From NCBI GenBank assembly GCA_004764695.1, contig SMSO01000031.1, positions 8,724,761 through 8,788,760 on the forward strand: a stretch of DNA of 64,000 nt, given 5' to 3'. The DNA is from Schizochytrium sp. TIO01. Lineage: Eukaryota; Protista; Bigyra: Labyrinthulomycetes. The notes beneath the pieces were generated by a model that was not told where the DNA came from, ran no database searches, and saw only the letters and a program-made list of their open reading frames with translations. Positions within the stretch are counted from its first letter, which is position 1, and every line of letters begins with the position of its first letter. Below are positions 1 through 61,509 of the stretch, piece by piece. A program made the translations under genes and the position numbers.

Positions 1-2088
1 TATCTGAATCGTATTCATTCAACCAATTCCCAGCCAATTTCATGTTATCATGGTCGTTGTTGAAGTGGACTCTTTTCATTTATCCCCAGCAGGAAGTGTC
101 AAAATCCGGTGCTGCGCCACCTTGCGCAAGCATAGGTCTTTGCAAAGCTCAGATACGCAAGCAGTCGCTCATGAACAAACATGGGATGAGAGGAGAGTAT
201 TCGGACGTTTCTTTGTTCATTCAGGCAAGGTACGAGGCGTTCATTTTTGCATAGCGGACATGAGAGGTATTGCTGATATATGGCTTTGTACGAGAGCCAC
301 AGTATGTTGGGATAGCATGTGCTAAGAGACTTGCATGTTTCTAGCGCCGCGACTATTGTGAGCTCCATGGGAAATATTCTGGCGAGATTGCTAACCGAGA
401 AACGACAATTGATGGTATGATGACGCGCAACTTCATGTAGGAAGTCTGGTGCATCATTTGATCCTGTCGCTGTACAAGTCATAGCCAGAGAAAGGGGTAC
501 CTACTAACGCTAATTTAGGGTTCGCTCTTTGGAAATTAGTCGAGCTCTGTATGCTATTAGCGAAACGCATTACACAAGAAAGTAAAGTACCAAGCACTAC
601 TCAAAAAGCTCCGAAAGGGAATCAGACATCCTAGAACCATAATTTACAGGACATAGAGACACACACTTCTCGCCCCCAACATTATTTGCTCGCCTCTTTC
701 AGTTGCGACGATTCGCTGTACTAATGATTTTTAAACTTTGTGTGGAAGTCGTTATTAATCTTAGAGCATTCAACTTATTGAATTGCAGCATATGCAAGTC
801 ACTATCACTTGTTCAAAGCTGGTAATGAAGCAATTGATACTTCGATTGAAAATTGTATTCACAGACCTAACTTTGCGACACGGTCAGGAACCATGATAGA
901 CCAGTACTTCCCTTTGGACCAATTAACTTTCTCCAGTTAGGGCGTTAGGGCTGTTTTTTTCCAGAGATTAGCAAAACAATCAGACGGGTCGTCAAATGCC
1001 ATGACTTCATGGGGAAGTTGGAGAACATTTATACCAGAACTGCTCGATACTATAGCAAGTAACCAGTGGACGTAGCAAAAGAATAAAGCTTGAAGGGAAT
1101 TCTTGCTGACAATGGGAGGACATCTCCAATCTTCAGATTTCAATATATAGTATTAGTAATCTCGATTATCTAATAAGGATTAGGTCAAATAGAAAGTATT
1201 CACGAGAGGAAGCAAAATACCCTTGCACAAGAATATATGTCTTTGGCAAAACCTTCGCGTAATAGAGAGAATATGAATATTTGCCCTCATGCGTTGAAGT
1301 TAGATGACATAAAGAACTTGGGTTCATCTCGCAAGACTCTAACTACAAATATCTTTGGTGATAACTGCGAACAGCAGTAGCTGAATACTATCATTAGAGA
1401 AGTGGGAAAACTGAGGAGCTCAGCAGACAACTATTATCGATGAAGTGAAGCCATTGGTTTGGTGTAAAACTGCAAAAAGTACACAACTCAGTGAACAGCC
1501 TATTTTTCTACTTTACAAGTTTTGTTTTGTTTAGAACTTGAAAATATACATGCCTGAATACCGCGATGACATCAAGCGAATTATGACTGCTTTAACAAAT
1601 GTGATATATAATGACTCTCGTCTGAGTGCACACTGGTACGAAGAAAATGAGTTCTCTGTGTGCTGATAATATAGTGAAGGTTAAAATTGCAGAGTAGAAC
1701 CGTAGAACCCAAGGCTTACTTTGTGACAGGTATAAGTCTGATAGATTTTTTCCTAATGTGTGGTGACACTTAAGGAACGCGAGTTAGACACCGTTGGGAG
1801 TGCCAAAATTTGATAAAACGCTGAGAGATATAAGTCCTGTGCAACTTTGTATCAGATGAAGGATGCCTAGCCACGTAAATGTCGCTATCGCATCTCACTA
1901 TGAAACATAGTTTTAAACCAGAGAAAGAGTTAGATAGAAATAATAGATCAATTTTCTTCAAAAACAAAACACCAAACCCCCGAGTCCTGCAGATTTCGAG
2001 ATAACCCGCGGCTTTATCACAGGCTTGCAAGGAGTGTTGGAGACGCTGGCGGTCTCAAACGGTCTCCGAGAGGCCAGTTCTCTCGGCA

Positions 2089-4635
2089 ATGCCTGCTCTG
2101 CGTTTTCTGCGACGGCAGTTCGCCTTTGGAGACGATGATCTACCTCTGCCGTCGTGCATGGGGTTGGTGTCGAGACTCCTGCTCATTACCGCACTGGTTG
2201 CAAGCTTGATGGTAATCAGAGACGTAGATTTTGCAGAAGATACAAGTCCATGTTCTAGCGATGAAGATGGCGTCGAGAAGGTTCAGGCTATAAGGATCCT
2301 TGCTATCATCTTGATCGCTTTGCTCAGCCTCACAACCTTCGTTTTGATGCTCCTCTTTCTGCATTCACTTCGAGGGACTATTGTGGATAGCGCAGAACGA
2401 TCACTCGTGATTCCACTTCTCAAAAGCGTTGTTTTTCTTGTTTCTAGCGAGGGTATTGCGGCTCTTGCAGGGCTTGGCCCTGCGTTGCGATCGGTGCCAC
2501 ATGGGTGCAAGGGCATTGCGGATAAGGATTTGCATCTAACCTTTCTGGTGGTCCGACTTGTGATTGTTGCTGTACTAGTAATGGCGACCTTCTTCTTTAC
2601 TTGTGGTTTCCTCACGGTGACCAACAAACGCACAAACTACACTTACCATCAGGGAAGTAGTGGGAGTTATAGCTCGCTGGATAGTAACTCACGGCCCCTT
2701 AGGGACTTTAATGGCGATGACGACCTGGATTTAGAGGACCAAGCCATGTTCTTCGTGGACGTTGAACATGCCACAGATTCAGAGGGCATGTCAATGTCGG
2801 TTACTCGCCTCGACTGGGAGAAAAGGTGCCGCAGGTGGTGCAGGTGCTTTCAGATTATCACCTGCAATATTTTTGGCAGTTCATATCACGAAGTCACCGA
2901 CGAAACATACCGAGACGTGGCCAACGTCATGGCACGATTTTTCAAGGGCATGGACGTTGTCCCGTCAGATCTGATTGCAGCTTTATGCCTCCTCCGTGCG
3001 GAGCAACGGTCAAAGGAAAAGGCTGCTGTTGACGCGCTCTTGAAGTCACAGACCTCTGGCCGCACACTTCGCCACGAGATTGAGCAAGAAATTACACAAC
3101 ATGTTGAAGCTGATCACGAACAGTCAGTCCACGAGTGGTTGTGGTCTGCAGAGAACTTGAAGTACAAGGCCAGGACTCTGTTACGCATTCAACACATTAG
3201 CGAAGCACGAATTGCAGTAGACGCAGATGCGCGGCAACTGTTAGCAGAGGCCAATCATTTTGCGCCGTACATGCTCGCCATTTATGGCAAACTATTGTAT
3301 ACGTATATGAATATTGTGACCGGCCCTTGCCAGCTACTGTGCGGAGAGCACTGCAAGTTTTGCCTTGGCCTTGCGGCTCGAAAGCGCAAGCGCCGTACCT
3401 CGGATGATAATATTTCTTCTCTTCGTCAAACCCACTCGAGTGATTTCTCTCAGAACATGCTAGATGACGACTGCTGTGGGTTAAATTACTCCGCTTTGCA
3501 AAGAAGTGCGATTGGAGGGCGAGATCCTGTCTTTGTCTTTGCCAGCTTTGGTAATCGCCCACATTTTCTACCTTATTCTATTGGTGTAGATGAAGAAACT
3601 CGCACGGTAGTACTGGCTGTCCGAGGTACTTTATCTGCTTCTGATATGCTTGTTGACGCTGTAGTAATACCACAATCCTTGCAAGCCTCTGCGGAGCGCT
3701 GGGGATTCTCGGGTATGATTGGAGAGGAATCCTACGCACATTCGGGCATGCTCCGCACGGCAGAGAACATGCGCAAGGACATTGAAGAAAGACACATTTT
3801 GCATACACTACTGTTAGGCGCCCGCGAGGCCAATGCTTCGTATGGCTCTTTCAATTCTAATCATGCCCAGCATGATCAGGCTGACCCGGAACGAAGTCTT
3901 CCAAATCGCCCATCCGCACGGATGAACGTTCATGACCTTTCGGATTTGCCAGATTGTAGAGGCTACAATCTCAAAGTTGTGGGCCACAGTCTTGGCGCTG
4001 GTGTTGCATCAATCTTGTCGCTTATGCTGCAGGACGCCTTCCCAGGCCTCACTTGTCTCGCATATTCTCCACCCGGATGCGTTTTTGACTTTGAACTTGC
4101 ATGCCGGTCAGAGGCATGGATCAAAAGTATTTTTGTTGGTAGTGACCTGATCCCTCATTCTTCTTGGGGTTCACTCATGCGATTGCGAGGTCAAATGATG
4201 GAAATGCTGCGGCGTAGCAAGGTGAATAAAGCAAAGGCGATCCGCTCAGCTATTCTCAATACCCCTGCTGAAGATCTGCTTTACCCTGAGGACGGCGTAC
4301 CAGAAACCTTTGCTCGTCGTCAACTTGCAATTCGAATTGAGCAGCTTCGCAAGCAAACAGAGGGGTCGGACTTTCTCAATCGCACGCCAATGTTTTGCCC
4401 TGGTAAACTTCTCCACATCATGCGAATTGACACCGTGCAAGAAGGGATGTGCTCTTCTCGTGACGAGTTCATGCCAACATGGGTAAGGGATCGCCGTACA
4501 TTGCACGAGTTTGATCTTGGATCTTCTACAAGAATGGCACTTGATCATTTTCCAGATGTCAGTGCATCTGTAATCGACCGAGTTGCCAAAGAATTCGCAT
4601 CTCTCGACGACCGTTTTCACGGGTTTCATGTATAG
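2089..4635 (+). CDS. sn1-specific diacylglycerol lipase (DAGL alpha/beta-like), class 3 lipase
   Basis: 848-aa ORF with four N-terminal hydrophobic helices, the 'DVVPSDLIAALCLL' DAGL segment, 'VLAVRGTLS', 'AHSGM', nucleophile motif GHSLGAG, 'YSPPG' and C-terminal 'DHFPD'. Confidence 0.88.
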   Translation: MPALRFLRRQFAFGDDDLPLPSCMGLVSRLLLITALVASLMVIRDVDFAEDTSPCSSDEDGVEKVQAIRILAIILIALLSLTTFVLMLLFLHSLRGTIVDSAERSLVIPLLKSVVFLVSSEGIAALAGLGPALRSVPHGCKGIADKDLHLTFLVVRLVIVAVLVMATFFFTCGFLTVTNKRTNYTYHQGSSGSYSSLDSNSRPLRDFNGDDDLDLEDQAMFFVDVEHATDSEGMSMSVTRLDWEKRCRRWCRCFQIITCNIFGSSYHEVTDETYRDVANVMARFFKGMDVVPSDLIAALCLLRAEQRSKEKAAVDALLKSQTSGRTLRHEIEQEITQHVEADHEQSVHEWLWSAENLKYKARTLLRIQHISEARIAVDADARQLLAEANHFAPYMLAIYGKLLYTYMNIVTGPCQLLCGEHCKFCLGLAARKRKRRTSDDNISSLRQTHSSDFSQNMLDDDCCGLNYSALQRSAIGGRDPVFVFASFGNRPHFLPYSIGVDEETRTVVLAVRGTLSASDMLVDAVVIPQSLQASAERWGFSGMIGEESYAHSGMLRTAENMRKDIEERHILHTLLLGAREANASYGSFNSNHAQHDQADPERSLPNRPSARMNVHDLSDLPDCRGYNLKVVGHSLGAGVASILSLMLQDAFPGLTCLAYSPPGCVFDFELACRSEAWIKSIFVGSDLIPHSSWGSLMRLRGQMMEMLRRSKVNKAKAIRSAILNTPAEDLLYPEDGVPETFARRQLAIRIEQLRKQTEGSDFLNRTPMFCPGKLLHIMRIDTVQEGMCSSRDEFMPTWVRDRRTLHEFDLGSSTRMALDHFPDVSASVIDRVAKEFASLDDRFHGFHV

Positions 4636-31363: not shown

Positions 31364-32674
31364 TTTGAAACACTTTGCTATATTCCTGTGCAAATTTCTT
31401 TATACAATGTTTTATTGTGATCAATAGTACTTCCATAATCTCAAATTAAGATCCTTCGCAAGTCTACTCTTGTATACATACTTAATCAGAAAATATATTA
31501 TGCGTGTTTGCCATGTTTTCCAATATTCACAGATATATTTAACGTTTAAATTGTTTCCCCTGATTTACCAAATCTTGAAACAGAATTGCACCTGATACAC
31601 ATTTGCCATCTCTCCATACCATTGATAAAACAGTTCTTATTAAGATAAAGACAAGAGCGGTCGTTGCAAGTCCTAGATTTCATATATAGCTAAATAGCAA
31701 ATGTGGAGCTCTAGGTAATTTTTTTTAGCATGTGTATGGATCTATTGCAATGAAAAGAGTTATGGAAGAGCTGAGCATAGCGTATTCGTTGCTTTAAGGC
31801 CAGAAAATTTTCCTAATGTATGATGTCTTGGTTGAAAAGGAAATTTAATGTGTTTGTCTTTTCCCGAAGAGTTAAGAATTCTACCGGATATTTCAAGAGT
31901 GGGCAGTGAATATGCATATAGCTACTAGATTCGACATTGCAGTAAATCGGTGTCCCGGTTTTCCGAGGAAATGATCTCTTTCAACTGAAATAGAACAAAG
32001 ATAAATTCTGGTTCTATCCCTGTTAATTATCGCACAAGGTGCGCGCGCACGCTACTCACTAGTCGTATGGGAACAAACACTTCATATTCTACTATTACAA
32101 AGTCGTGCACAGGTTTAAAATTTAAAGAAAGTTACATTTTAATATTAGTGCTCCTTTTTCAGCTCTTCTTTCGGAAGAATAACTTTGCTCTGCAACGTTC
32201 TCGACATGATTACTCTTTTCAAGAGCATTAACTGCCGTGCGCAGATACGTTCTCTAAGACGTATGTCTTGCACTTCGATTCCAGTATTTGAAACACGTCC
32301 CATCACAACAACTCCTCCGTATAGTTATATCAAGAAGTTGATTCTTGAATCTCCAGTTCCAAATGGCCACACGCAAAAGTTCCTAGAGGACAAATAAATT
32401 ATACATCAGCATTATTTGCACAATTAGCACTTGCACTCTCCCATAGCCTAAGAACAACGAGGGTCCTCAATATCAACAGTCACACCCATCATGCATGCTC
32501 CTACAATTCCTGCGAAGGCACATATTCATACATCTCGGACAGATGCTCTCAACATCACATTTACAATTCTGCGCAAATCGCATGCATCTCAGACAGCATA
32601 ATAATACTCAGAATGTCCTCTCTACTAATTATTTAGGTCTTTGTTAAGGGATGGAGATTAGGTAAGAAACTGGA

Positions 32675-32988
32675 ATGGCCAAGGAACCACCAACTCCAAA
32701 CACTACAAGTGGAATCAAATCTTCAATTCAACTTACCAAGAACTTCAACCAAAAGTTTGGTGCCTCAGCAAGTGCCCTTCGGGTGCTTTCCCGGAGGCAA
32801 TCGCATATACGCAAGTGGCACCTATGGCTGCGGTTTGTTACGCCAGGGTGCCCTCCGCCAAACAAAAAGAGAACTCCAACTGCAGGATTGGTGACCTCTA
32901 GCGTGTCTAACCAGACGCCTCCGCCGTCTACAAAGATGTTGGTGGAGGGTTTAGCTTCAAAAGGACGGGCTTGTGCGCCCTCCTGGAC
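32675..32988 (+). pseudogene. tnpA: IS607 TnpA serine recombinase relic (N-terminal HTH plus start of catalytic domain)
   Basis: Manual translation across frames gives 'QKFGASASALR', 'FPGGNRIY' and, from 32836, 'CYARVPSAKQKENSNCRIGDL*RV*PDASAVYKDVGGGFSFKRTGLCALLD'. This matches the IS607 pattern YARVSSxKQ...KDxGSGLNFKRxGLxxLLD. The catalytic Ser position reads Pro and there are two stops. Confidence 0.88.
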
Positions 32989-33360
32989 TACCGAGATACA
33001 CTGCAAGCTTGCACTTTGGTTCTGTGACAACAATCCTTTTGCCTAAATCTGACACCTCAACAGGTTTACAAGAACGATCGAGATCAACAACGATCGAGAT
33101 CAAGACAGCTCAAATGCTGAGTCGTTGGCCTCCGGCAAGAGCTCATCCACAACGCCGAGCTTCTCCCGTGCCAGTGGTGTAAAGCGGTTCTTCGCCGAGA
33201 GGGTTGCACTTCAATACCATGCAATGAATGTAGGTGGTACCATCCACGGAACATCCAAGGTTTTCTAATGTCCCCCCAAAATGCAAACGCGTAGCCGACC
33301 GCGATACCCACGCCGCCAAATGCATGCATCCCTTGGCGCTACCTCTCCAAGGACATGATT
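32987..33360 (+). pseudogene. Fanzor2/TnpB relic, C-terminal half (bridge helix, RuvC-II, zinc finger, RuvC-III)
   Basis: Frameshifted segments read 'TTEIHCKLALWFCDNN / ILLPKSDTS / IEIKTAQMLSRW / RQELIHNAELLPCQWCKAVLRREGCTSIPCNECRWYH / SKVF*CP / KCKRVADRDTHAAKC / RYLSKDM'. Confidence 0.88.
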
Positions 33361-33555
33361 CAAGAGTTGTCTTTGAGTTCCGGGTTCGCGATTGGGCCTT
33401 AGCCCCGTTTGGCACAGTGGGAAATGCAAGTTCTGCAAATTTTATAGGGTAAATTATAGGCGTCTTACCATGATATGACTAGGAAAAAGACGAACAGAAA
33501 AAGAAAGAGTCGAGGAAGGTAACAAATCGACAAGGAGCAACAGACCCTTCCCTCG

Positions 33556-58613: not shown

Positions 58614-59559
58614 TAACGCAACAAAAAAGAAAAAGAAAAGCAAAAAGAGCAGGAGCTTTCTATTATCTATCGATTCGTGAGGCCCAGGGTTGCTCTTCGA
58701 TATCTATCTCGGCGATCGCAACGAAGCTCCGATCTTACCAGATGCCCACGTCGCGTCCGTAGCCCGCTGTGGAGGTCCTCGGTGGATCGCAGACGAGGGG
58801 TAGTAATGATTCTACGCGAGTGTCAAGCGAAAGAAAGAGAGGAAAAAGAACAAACGAACGAATGATTTAGTCAAGTCAATGAATGCGCTGAGTGAGTCTG
58901 ACCTGGCGGCCGGCGCCCACACTGTCACTGGTGCAGAGCAAGATCGATCTCAGATGCTCCCTCGAGGCGTAAAAATCCCGTGGCTCAGCGAGTCGCGGTC
59001 TTTGCCGGCACTACTGCTCCTCAGCTCCGGCAGCGAGCAGAGTTGTGGCAATGCCAGCCCGCGCATGCTGCTTCTCCGGCCTCACTAACGGGGTTCCACA
59101 AGTTCCAAATGTTCTAAATGTTCAGCATCAAGGCTCCGGGATCCTCGGAAATCCTCGTGGCTCTCCGCGCTGTCCGGGCCAAAAGGGTCTGCGAAGCGCC
59201 AGACCGCACCCCGGCCGTGCAGCGGGGATCAGGGCAAAATATGCCGCCAGCCCGGCCAATTTTGGCTGAGAATTCATCGAAAAGGCGCCCCTTTCGGCTC
59301 ATCAGAGCTTGCCACGTGGGCACTCATATATGCTATGTGAAGATGGTTCATGTGCTCTCTATTTCGGTGACCTGGCGCCGCAAACCTCGAATTCGTTCTG
59401 CCCAAACGAGATGAGGTTCGAGGGCCTGCGCTGCCATGGCCGAGCTCCGGTCGCCTGCTTCGGGGTTGTGCGCCGGGGTCTCGGTTTTTGGTCCTTTGTG
59501 TACATGCACGTGTGTATTATGAAGAAGATTACACGAGTGAGACCAAAGAGTGAATGTCG

Positions 59560-59609
59560 CATTGCATTGCATTGCATTACATTACATTACATTCATTACA
59601 TTCATTCAT
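59560..59609 (+). repeat. Degenerate (CATTG/CATTA/CATT)n microsatellite
   Basis: Read directly from the sequence. Confidence 0.8.
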
Positions 59610-59916
59610 CGCGGTGTGTCCTTCGTTTTCAGGGGTCGTGCCTCAAACAGATCTCGCTCCGCAAGTTGACTTCATCAAGACCGGAACCCTCGTGAGACGC
59701 ATGAGATAATAGCTTACGCGAGCAGAGCGGACTTCTCAAAGGGACACGATTCTTCGCCATCGATGCGAAATGTGCAAACTTGGGATCGCGGAAACTCCAC
59801 GCATGAAAACGTTAGAGGTTACGTAACTTCCGAATGGAAGTTTTTATTTCATGGAGGTGATATGTTAGAGTTATTTAGGCCTTTGCTAAGAGGTGGGGGC
59901 GAGGTAAGAAAATGGC

Positions 59917-60390
59917 ACGGCTAAGGAACCACCAGCACAGACGGAGGAAGCCAGCAAAGTAATTCAACCAAAAGCCTGGCGTCTCAGCAAGTAAACTTCC
60001 GGCGTTCCACTGGAAGAAACTGCATCATCGCATCTATGGATGCGGCTCCGGAGCCCGCGAGCAACGCAGCACTGACCGTACCATTATCTACGGCATGCAC
60101 CAAGCAAAAGGGGAACTTCAAATGTCTGATTGGTGATCTCCAGGGTGTTTATTCAGACGCCTCTGATGTCTATAAAGACATCGGCAGAGAGATCAACTTC
60201 AGGAGGCCGGACATGTTCGCCCTAGCGGACGATGCCTGCCTGTGACAGCTGCGGACTTAGTCATGCATCAGTATTAACTTGTGCGAATCGCCATCGACCT
60301 CCTTGAGCACCTTTTTCGAAAGAGTAAATGTCAAACTTCTGGTGTACGGCCAAGCTGCACACGCAGGAGACTCCAACACCTTACACAGGA
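59917..60390 (+). pseudogene. tnpA: IS607 TnpA serine recombinase relic
   Basis: 'FNQKPGVSASKL', 'TIIY', 'TKQKGNFKCLIGDLQGVYSDASDVYKDIGREINFRRPDMFALAD', 'LVRIAIDLLEHLFRK' across frameshifts and stops. Confidence 0.85.
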
Positions 60391-60419
60391 ACCATATTTG
60401 TTGACAAAATCTAAACTAA

Positions 60420-60860
60420 CTTGGCGAAAAACTATGCCTACCTACGCGCACTCCTCAAAATCACAAACAAGACTACCGAAATTCACCATAAGTTTACACA
60501 TTGGCTCTGTGAAAACTATCGCATTATTTATTCTTTTACCTAAATTTGACACCTCCTAGATAGTCAACAAGTTGACAAGACGGGACAAAAGCAAGTCGGT
60601 TCGAGTGATGTGTCGTTGGGCCATTTTAGCTTTGCCAAGCGTCCATTCACAAACGCGAGCTTTTCCTCTGGTGAAGACTTGTTATTTGCCGAGGGGATTA
60701 CACCTCAAAAACATGCAACGCAAGTGTGACCAGCTAAGATAAGCTCGAAACATCCAACTTGAAGGTTTTCAAATGCCCAAAATACAATCATGTAGCCGAT
60801 CTTGATATCCACACCGTCAAAGGCATCCTTCTGCGCTATCTATCCGGGGACATGATCTAA
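60420..60860 (+). pseudogene. Fanzor2/TnpB relic, C-terminal half
   Basis: 'YAYLRALLKITNKTTEIHHKFTHWLCENYRII / ILLPKFDTS*IVNKLTRRDKSKSVRVMCRW / IHKRELFLW*RLVICRGDYTSKTCNA / LKVFKCPKYNHVADLDIHTVKGILLRYLSGDMI*'. Confidence 0.9.
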
Positions 60861-61509
60861 AAATTGTCTTTGAATTGTGGGTCACGTTTTAAACCTGTGA
60901 TTGGGCCTTAAACCACTTTGTCGCCATAGAAAATGCAAATTTTGCAAATTTTATAGGTGAATTACTAAGTGTTCACACTGGGCTTATGTTCCAAATGTTC
61001 ACAACGGACAAATTCGCGTTATAAGAGAAGGGATGGCGTACGCAGCGAAGCAGAGAAAATCACCTTCCAGGGTAGCCCTTGGAGAATTGGTGTTTGGAGT
61101 ACAGATGCAGAGGAAACCAATTCGAGCTTAGTTTGTTTGTGACGCTTTCTAGATGGTACATATATGTGCATTAGCTTTGAGATAGCTTGGGTAAAGGTAG
61201 CTGAGAAAAAGAGGAGGGGGTTGGTGTTTCTTGTTTCTTATTACAAAACAAAGTCCTCTGCTTTCCGCTTTGTTATACAGGCACGGCAACTCCTAGAAGA
61301 AGAGTAGGGCACTGGTTTGGGTCTAGCGGAACGTTAGTGCGAAGAAAGTAGTTCCGTCTCGCGGACCTCGGAAGCTGCAGGACTTAAGCAAGAGACTTTG
61401 CTGTTTATGCGCGGGAGGGAGCGAATCAAGAAACGCTCTGCTGTTTGAAGAGAAAGACATTTATTCCTCGTAGCGCAAACCACGTGAGTGACTGTCAACT
61501 ACATAAATC

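Follow-up and report, generated by a model that had tools for sequence, protein, structure and literature searches.

Two degenerate, mutually similar stretches lie on the forward strand of a 64,000-nucleotide window of the Schizochytrium sp. TIO01 genome (the whole stretch of DNA analysed here; contig SMSO01000031.1, positions 8,724,761 to 8,788,760), and they raise the question of what they are and how each of them came to be short. The first-pass annotation, made from the letters alone, had read them as independently deleted, old insertions of an IS607-type transposon encoding a recombinase, TnpA, and a Fanzor2 nuclease. Our analysis indicates that both, copy 1 (~32596-33462) and copy 2 (~59800-60971), are very probably dead copies of one eukaryotic IS607-type (IS607EU) family, with copy 1 belonging to an amplified derivative and copy 2 carrying a deletion of its own.

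The similarity between the two stretches was evaluated by blastn, using positions 59401-61400 as query against the window. Copy 2 aligned colinearly with copy 1 at 64-81% identity in three blocks (60471-60964 with 32986-33456, 64%, E 2e-24; 60100-60223 with 32858-32981, 73%, E 3e-15; 59871-59934 with 32629-32692, 81%, E 2e-11). The local alignment score of the two copies was 123, compared with 12.7 +/- 1.4 for 200 dinucleotide shuffles (z = 76), and their 400-bp flanks scored pairwise at shuffle level on either side. The similarity is thus real and stops at the element ends: the colinear blocks reported in the first-pass annotation hold, and the shared flanks that it had named as the sign of a segmental duplication are absent. 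Its peptides (LVRIAIDLLEHLFRK, EIHHKFTHWLCENYRII, ILLPKFDTS, DYTSKTC, KVFKCP and ILLRYL) were likewise all recovered, in the order given. Its bounds for copy 2, 59871-60964, fall on the right element, but comparison with the ends of intact copies extends this copy by 70 bp on the left and by 7 bp on the right. The left end of copy 1 is degraded and starts somewhere in 32596-32629. In the pairwise alignment the left and right ends are common to both copies, while copy 2 alone contains an additional large block. No third copy was detected in the 64-kb window by tblastn with intact TnpA and Fanzor2 proteins.

A DNA search of the organism's own genome (64 Mb, 37 contigs) revealed 58 matches to the window copies, in some of which the halves of copy 2 lay ~1 kb further apart than they do in copy 2. 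The full-length element measures 2,206 bp (locus L031:1756-3961; "ref" below denotes positions on this intact element), its copies are mutually 94-99% identical, and it carries two long open reading frames (ORFs), tnpA and Fanzor2. The first encodes 232 amino acids (intact copy L031:1870-2565) that match the NCBIfam model NF033518 "IS607 family transposase" with 144.9 bits (cut-off 110) over residues 27-210. Resolvase PF00239 was found at residues 83-216, and weak matches to MerR-type helix-turn-helix (HTH) domains at 28-66, N-terminal to the catalytic domain; the protein also contains YARVSS..Q. ORF1 is therefore an IS607-type serine recombinase with the inverted domain order, HTH then catalytic domain.

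The second frame matched the profiles NF040570 guided_TnpB, PF07282 Cas12f1-like_TNB and PF12323 HTH_OrfB_IS605, and its best PDB match by sequence was the mimivirus "TnpB-like protein L79" (ApmFz2; E 3e-19). An AlphaFold (AF2) model built from a 48-sequence alignment reached a mean predicted local distance difference test (pLDDT) score of 79.5, and its best structural match was the mimivirus Fanzor2 ternary complex 9b0l (Foldseek E 2.8e-17; VIA alignment of model residues 88-618 with 9b0l residues 53-518, Z 21.9, 432 residues). Fanzor proteins are described as having DPG in RuvC-I and a catalytic Glu relocated just upstream of the zinc finger (PMC10711439, PMC13565253), Bao & Jurka gave the Fanzor2 motif as D ... 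[TS][TS]xx-C4 zinc finger ... RD (PMC3627910), and a structured N-terminal domain missing from TnpB is known for Fanzor2 (Schargel 2025, PMC11832414). LDPGVR (RuvC-I), QESYTSKTC, ADRD and a C4 finger are all present here. Alignment invariants of the long protein are D416 (LDPG), T567-S568-K-T-C571, C574, C589, C594 and R600-D601, and E564, seven residues before the first zinc-finger Cys (C571), is invariant in the 48 sequences. By these signatures ORF2 is a Fanzor2, a predicted RNA-guided nuclease. The TnpA and Fanzor2 identities assigned at first pass thus stand, intact relatives matching NF033518 and the mimivirus Fanzor2, respectively. The consensus nuclease proposed at that stage turned out to be unnecessary, since natural intact copies exist in the genome; these were used throughout.

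Protein searches of the genome identified 15 stop-free full-length Fanzor cores (89-100% identical), 10 stop-free TnpAs and nine elements with both genes open; broken matches (33-60% identity) numbered well above one hundred. A 23-nt right-end motif occurred 121 times genome-wide with up to 3 mismatches, compared with once for the reversed control. Together with the 58 DNA matches, these counts agree with the dispersed, genome-wide family foreseen in the first-pass annotation. The copies fall into two age classes by Kimura two-parameter (K2P) distance: young full-length copies lie at 0.003-0.062 (mean 0.040) and old copies, both window copies included, at 0.25-0.39. At least two phases of activity are thus indicated, the older of which produced the window copies. 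Copies 1 and 2 are 0.38 K2P apart, and each is nearer to copies on other contigs.

How the two copies lost their middle parts was determined by placing them on the intact element. Copy 1 corresponds to ref 71-229 and 367-516, followed directly by 1712-2095, with a junction at 32988-32990 (ref 516/1712) from which ~1.2 kb is gone. Copy 2 corresponds to ref 63-137 and 307-671, followed by 1682-2098; its junction lies within 60387-60434, with ~850-1000 bp gone and ~47-60 bp of unmatched filler, and the deletion removed the end of tnpA and the REC/WED/RuvC-I part of Fanzor2. The two copies thus break at different places, as had been annotated. This difference, and the finding that the copy 2 junction recurs at no other scored locus, would fit a history in which both copies inserted full-length and then suffered separate deletions at their present sites. 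In multiple alignment, however, the copy 1 junction was found base-for-base in seven further copies (L007, L010, L011, L014, L018, L019 and L030) with unrelated flanks, and a 201-bp probe centred on it was contiguous at no fewer than 39 further dispersed loci, a lower bound, as scoring covered 40 of 111 candidates. Deletions of independent origin should not hit one and the same base pair repeatedly, which makes this history very improbable; in-place deletion was rejected for copy 1, whose junction is common to dispersed loci and which was therefore already short when it inserted. The claim of independent deletion from full-length insertions accordingly fails for this copy.

Copy 1 is instead a member of a ~0.85-kb non-autonomous derivative with at least 40 members, which multiplied after its deletion and whose members inherited the junction as a subfamily character. 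The derivative lacks ref 517-1711, i.e. the end of tnpA and most of Fanzor2, and makes up at least one third of all recognisable copies. As it can make neither protein, its mobilisation must have occurred in trans. The junction of copy 2 (60387-60434) was spanned by none of the other loci scored genome-wide, and the deletion looks private and probably arose in place. Copy 2 is an old member of a related lineage, nearest in sequence to full-length relics such as L002; in this closest full-length relic (~74% identical) the two sides of the junction lie 904 bp apart.

A further alternative is that the copies are remnants of integrated giant-virus DNA and not a cellular transposon family. Fanzor2 with IS607 is common in giant viruses, and giant-virus contigs of IMG/VR hold relatives with the same nested gene layout (described below). 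The copies, however, sit on many different contigs as separate units of 0.85-2.2 kb whose ends are defined. Moreover, the closest relative of the nuclease was an MMETSP protist transcript (91%), followed by unlabelled ENA/Logan/NCBI contigs (45-50%) and by a protein of the dinoflagellate Durusdinium trenchii (P0015, 46%) called "transposase A625R", a name that is that of a chlorovirus Fanzor2. No close viral relative was found: the best among viral matches, from IMG/VR, reached 35%, while metagenome-assembled genomes (MAGs) of giant viruses gave 25-33% and the chloroviruses PBCV-1 and NY-2A 26%. A FastTree phylogeny with 99 rows took the cyanobacterial pro-Fanzor Moorena P0112 as its root, and in it the family fell into a well-supported 38-row clade without any viral row. 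Viral rows branched basally, below this clade, as a viral source might predict; by this weak method, the family groups with viral and eukaryotic Fanzor2 next to cyanobacterial pro-Fanzors. On balance we consider a viral remnant very unlikely; an ancient viral route, such as the giant-virus origin called plausible in the first-pass annotation, may apply, but no viral donor emerged from these comparisons. Segmental or tandem duplication within the 64-kb region, to which the spacing of only 27 kb and the common strand might point, can be dismissed almost entirely, given flanks at shuffle level, a K2P distance of 0.38 with nearer copies on other contigs, and more than 100 dispersed copies with unique flanks.

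The preferred reading, two dead copies of one IS607EU family, is also reflected in what remains of each copy. In copy 2, a decayed non-coding left end (59800-59911) can be matched out to the outermost left base of the intact element (L031:1756), and it also aligns with L018 and L019 at their left ends. It is followed by a tnpA remnant at 59912-60392, which begins with an ATG at 59912 and covers approximately TnpA residues 21-189 with stops and frameshifts (tblastn against the intact 232-residue TnpA: E 1.6e-16 and 2.6e-10, two frames, several stops). Beyond the junction, a Fanzor2 C-terminal remnant at 60436-60860 corresponds to residues 479-618 of the long protein and comprises RuvC-II, zinc finger and RuvC-III in three frames with stops (tblastn E 3.6e-34, three high-scoring segment pairs, 51-68% identity; TAA stop at 60858-60860). 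Its signature residues are incomplete: the first D has been deleted, one Cys is missing and LD stands in place of RD. The non-coding right end (60861-60971) contains three hairpins, terminates in ...CTAAGTG, and is a candidate scaffold for a guide (omega) RNA and/or a candidate TnpA site. Copy 1 consists of the degraded left end (32596-32692, exact start within the interval given above), a tnpA remnant at 32693-32988 (TnpA residues 9-134; tblastn E 3e-20, three frames), a Fanzor2 C-terminal remnant at 32990-33363 (residues 492-618; tblastn E 1.7e-10) and a non-coding right end at 33364-33462 that terminates in ...TATAGGCG. All of these features lie on the forward strand, and both relics retain the gene order tnpA then Fanzor2 on the same strand. 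Neither copy can be functional; both are inert fossils.

The element ends were examined in 19 young copies. All of them terminate in ...CTAAGAG, CAG stands directly left of TATGAC... in 13, and the first base to the right of the element is A or T in 18. No flanking direct repeat that would represent a target-site duplication (TSD) was seen in these 19 copies, and a repeat search of L031:1700-4020 found no inverted pair joining the two ends, and hence no terminal inverted repeats (TIRs). IS607 elements are known to cross over at a matching dinucleotide (PMC10711439, PMC6188088); judged from the junctions, this dinucleotide appears to be AG here, with CAG as left flank, compared with GG in bacteria. 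The left flanks likewise suggest a 3-nt CAG-like target-adjacent motif (TAM).

The ~110 nt that follow the Fanzor stop are conserved even between copies that are otherwise 30% diverged. The right end of young copies folded better than 200 of 200 shuffles (z -2.98), and in alignment A5 two hairpins had standard pairs in 87.8% of cells, compared with 29-57% when the partners were slid; automatic folding of coarsely trimmed right ends with RNAalifold yielded next to nothing. By analogy with other Fanzor2 systems (PMC10530073, PMC11832414), the right end is compatible with an omegaRNA scaffold. As an observation on old copies, both arms of the first right-end hairpin of copy 2 (60900-60930; A5 columns 36-64) have changed from CGCG to TGTG, a CpG-to-TpG change on both strands that retains G-U pairs. 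The pattern suggests CpG decay in old copies, possibly driven by methylation.

On the model of IS607 and TnpB biology, TnpA would excise the element as a double-stranded circle and insert it by crossover at a short matching dinucleotide, while Fanzor2 together with the right-end RNA would cut the emptied donor site, whose repair would restore the element. The probably structured non-coding right end would be the expected source of the guide RNA. In the old phase (K2P ~0.30) the ~0.85-kb derivative was dominant and must have moved in trans, copy 1 being one of its at least 40 members; copy 2, from a related old lineage, most likely acquired its ~0.85-1-kb deletion in place. The young phase (K2P 0.003-0.06) comprises the 15 stop-free Fanzor cores and the nine copies with both genes open.

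Several points weigh against this account. Covariation in the right end is not significant, with six pairs changed on both sides compared with 4.0 in shuffles, a value reached by 67 of 500, and a constraint on DNA bound by TnpA would be equally compatible with the conservation of this region. The dinucleotide AG derives from 13 of 19 left junctions, leaving six copies that deviate, and old copies terminate in TG or CG instead of AG. The copy counts are lower bounds, the own-genome searches having scored only part of the candidates; the copy 2 junction is private in the sense of not being found among scored loci; and the Fanzor2 tree was made with FastTree only.

Gilbert & Cordaux (2013, PMC3673617) reported no evidence that IS607 transposes in eukaryotes. 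Here, upwards of 120 copies are dispersed, set in unique flanks, and fall into two age classes; nine elements have both genes open, and a derivative that encodes no protein has multiplied. This genome thus gives strong genomic evidence of IS607 transposition in a eukaryote. With its natural intact genes, the organism offers a natural system in which transposition by a serine recombinase and homing by Fanzor2 can be studied inside a eukaryotic nucleus.

The element is of a known kind and forms an unusually large family; it was compared with described eukaryotic and viral IS607-Fanzor2 elements (Bao & Jurka 2013, PMC3627910; Jiang 2023, PMC10530073; Schargel 2025, PMC11832414). With ISvMimi_1/2 (whose nuclease is ApmFz2), the Acanthamoeba elements ACa-1/-2 and "IS607EU" it shares an IS607 TnpA combined with Fanzor2 and, judged from the young copies, probably the lack of TSDs. 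Further common features with these elements are the DPG and relocated-Glu RuvC signatures, a structured N-terminal domain that aligns with ApmFz2 53-130, a basic stretch before the core that resembles a nuclear localisation signal (NLS), and a conserved, probably structured non-coding 3' end. In contrast, identity to ApmFz2 is only 17-19% in structural alignment, the putative crossover/flank motif is (C)AG instead of the GGG TAM/GG core, and the inverted terminal repeats that Jiang et al. (PMC10530073) described for the mimivirus copy were not found here. More than 120 copies and an amplified non-autonomous derivative also set the family apart from these elements. The chlorovirus Fanzor2 proteins (PBCV-1 A625R and NY-2A) belong to the same family at 26% identity and share the N-terminal P-W-W...L..W, but their genes are shorter (432 residues) and lack an adjacent tnpA.

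Bacterial IS607 elements (H. pylori IS607, ISXfa1, cyanobacterial "pro-Fanzor"; Yoon 2023, PMC10711439) resemble the present one in a serine-recombinase TnpA with N-terminal HTH, TnpB downstream and the lack of TIRs, and, as far as the present data suggest, also in the lack of TSDs, matching-dinucleotide insertion and a right-end guide RNA. They differ in their crossover GG and in TnpBs without the N-terminal extension (Moorena P0112, 393 residues). The derivative to which copy 1 belongs recalls deletion derivatives of the type of miniature inverted-repeat transposable elements (MITEs) in that it retains both ends, has lost the middle and outnumbers autonomous relatives of the same age. Unlike these, it retains the whole right-end RNA region plus ~380 bp of Fanzor 3' coding sequence, and its mover would be a serine recombinase and not a DDE transposase.

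The intact element also revealed an unusual gene arrangement, in which tnpA lies entirely within the 5' part of the Fanzor2 reading frame, with Fanzor2 in the +1 frame. The tnpA ATG stands at L031:1870; 40 nt downstream of it, from L031:1910 on, the Fanzor frame is open, and the first ATG to follow the tnpA start (L031:1994) belongs to that frame. Synonymous-codon shuffles of L031 tnpA had on average 3.2 stops in the Fanzor frame, compared with 0 observed (P 0.0095). When six viral elements were analysed together with this one, the +1 frame was stop-free over 168-235 codons in all seven (P 0.10 to <0.0003), while the +2 frame contained 5-30 stops, as expected. An upstream tnpA was present at 68 viral or metagenomic loci, and at about 50 of these it overlapped Fanzor2 by 300-760 nt, always in the +1 frame. 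For the 27 clean nested loci, the median distance between the two ATGs was 58 nt (often 4-10 nt) and the median overlap 587 nt, and in 17 of them no ATG stands between the tnpA and Fanzor2 starts.

The overlap coincides with the part of Fanzor2 that TnpB lacks. Residues 1-87 of the Fanzor2 model are disordered, and residues 88-190 are folded with pLDDT 68-92. By VIA, ApmFz2 aligns from model residue 88, corresponding to its N-terminal domain (residues 53-130; PMC11832414), whereas for bacterial TnpB structures the alignment does not begin until residue 191, whose codon follows the tnpA stop. Both the disordered N-terminal part of Fanzor2 and its specific N-terminal domain are encoded over tnpA, and the TnpB-like core starts directly behind the tnpA stop. 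An N-terminal P-[FYW]-W...L-W motif is also found in Fanzor2 genes without tnpA, e.g. PBCV-1 A625R, which argues that the overlapping frame is truly coding. We give about even chances to the combined proposal that tnpA is nested in this family and in most of the sampled viral and metagenomic elements, that the Fanzor2 N-terminal domain and NLS-bearing head arose by overprinting, and that one transcript could yield both proteins. The latter could be achieved by leaky scanning or by alternative transcript starts. No mention of the nested layout was found in PMC3627910, PMC10711439, PMC10530073, PMC13565253 or PMC11832414. If confirmed, it would explain the origin of the Fanzor2-specific N-terminal domain as well as the expression of a two-gene bacterial element from eukaryotic-style transcripts.

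Two observations concern this overlap. At L031:2480-2568 a basic stretch is present in both frames, as KRAAQNRRRRRSEEE in the TnpA tail and as AARKKRARTKARKTTKK in Fanzor; in the latter it immediately precedes the TnpB-like core, the position of the NLS in ApmFz2, and by this analogy it may serve as nuclear localisation signal for both proteins. In a giant-virus MAG contig of IMG/VR (L056:2511-3212), the tnpA frame lacks any ATG, while the overlapping Fanzor ATG is at 2563; this tnpA either uses a non-AUG start or has lost its translation.

Among the young copies, five (L035:1592-1887, L045, L047, L048 and G000:C13:5455883-5456785) carry a 294-bp insertion at ref 196/197, in the tnpA N-terminus, as well as a TAA in tnpA, while their Fanzor2 frames are open. 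This lineage is TnpA-defective and Fanzor-only, and yet it multiplied. Loose contig ends at L031:1951/1952 were considered as a sign of splicing; this was rejected, as they mark the insertion of this subfamily. Three of ~23 young copies sit 30-400 bp from an old relic of the same family (L033:1021-1615 and 1702-3898; L015:1-627 and 657-1932; L017:468-1104 and 1484-3509), and two of the three pairs are head-to-head at their left ends. With relics accounting for ~0.2-0.4% of the genome, this proximity looks enriched; insertion beside resident ends, local hopping or islands rich in transposable elements are candidate reasons.

The element was also found in assembled contigs of sequencing runs from 11 studies with about ten organism labels. 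An oligo-dT RNA library contained two low-depth contigs inside the element, and MMETSP transcripts match as well, which provides weak evidence of expression. Over L031:1936-3867, coverage was strong in two runs presumed to be RNA and only ~1-2% of that level over 1768-1935, which includes the tnpA ATG, while a DNA run covered the element throughout. A main transcript start after the tnpA ATG is no more than hinted at by this pattern and is not relied on here, as contigs can show neither starts nor levels. Finally, a short tandem array of the CATTG/CATTA type is present at positions 59556-59610 of the window, ~200 bp upstream of the left end of copy 2.

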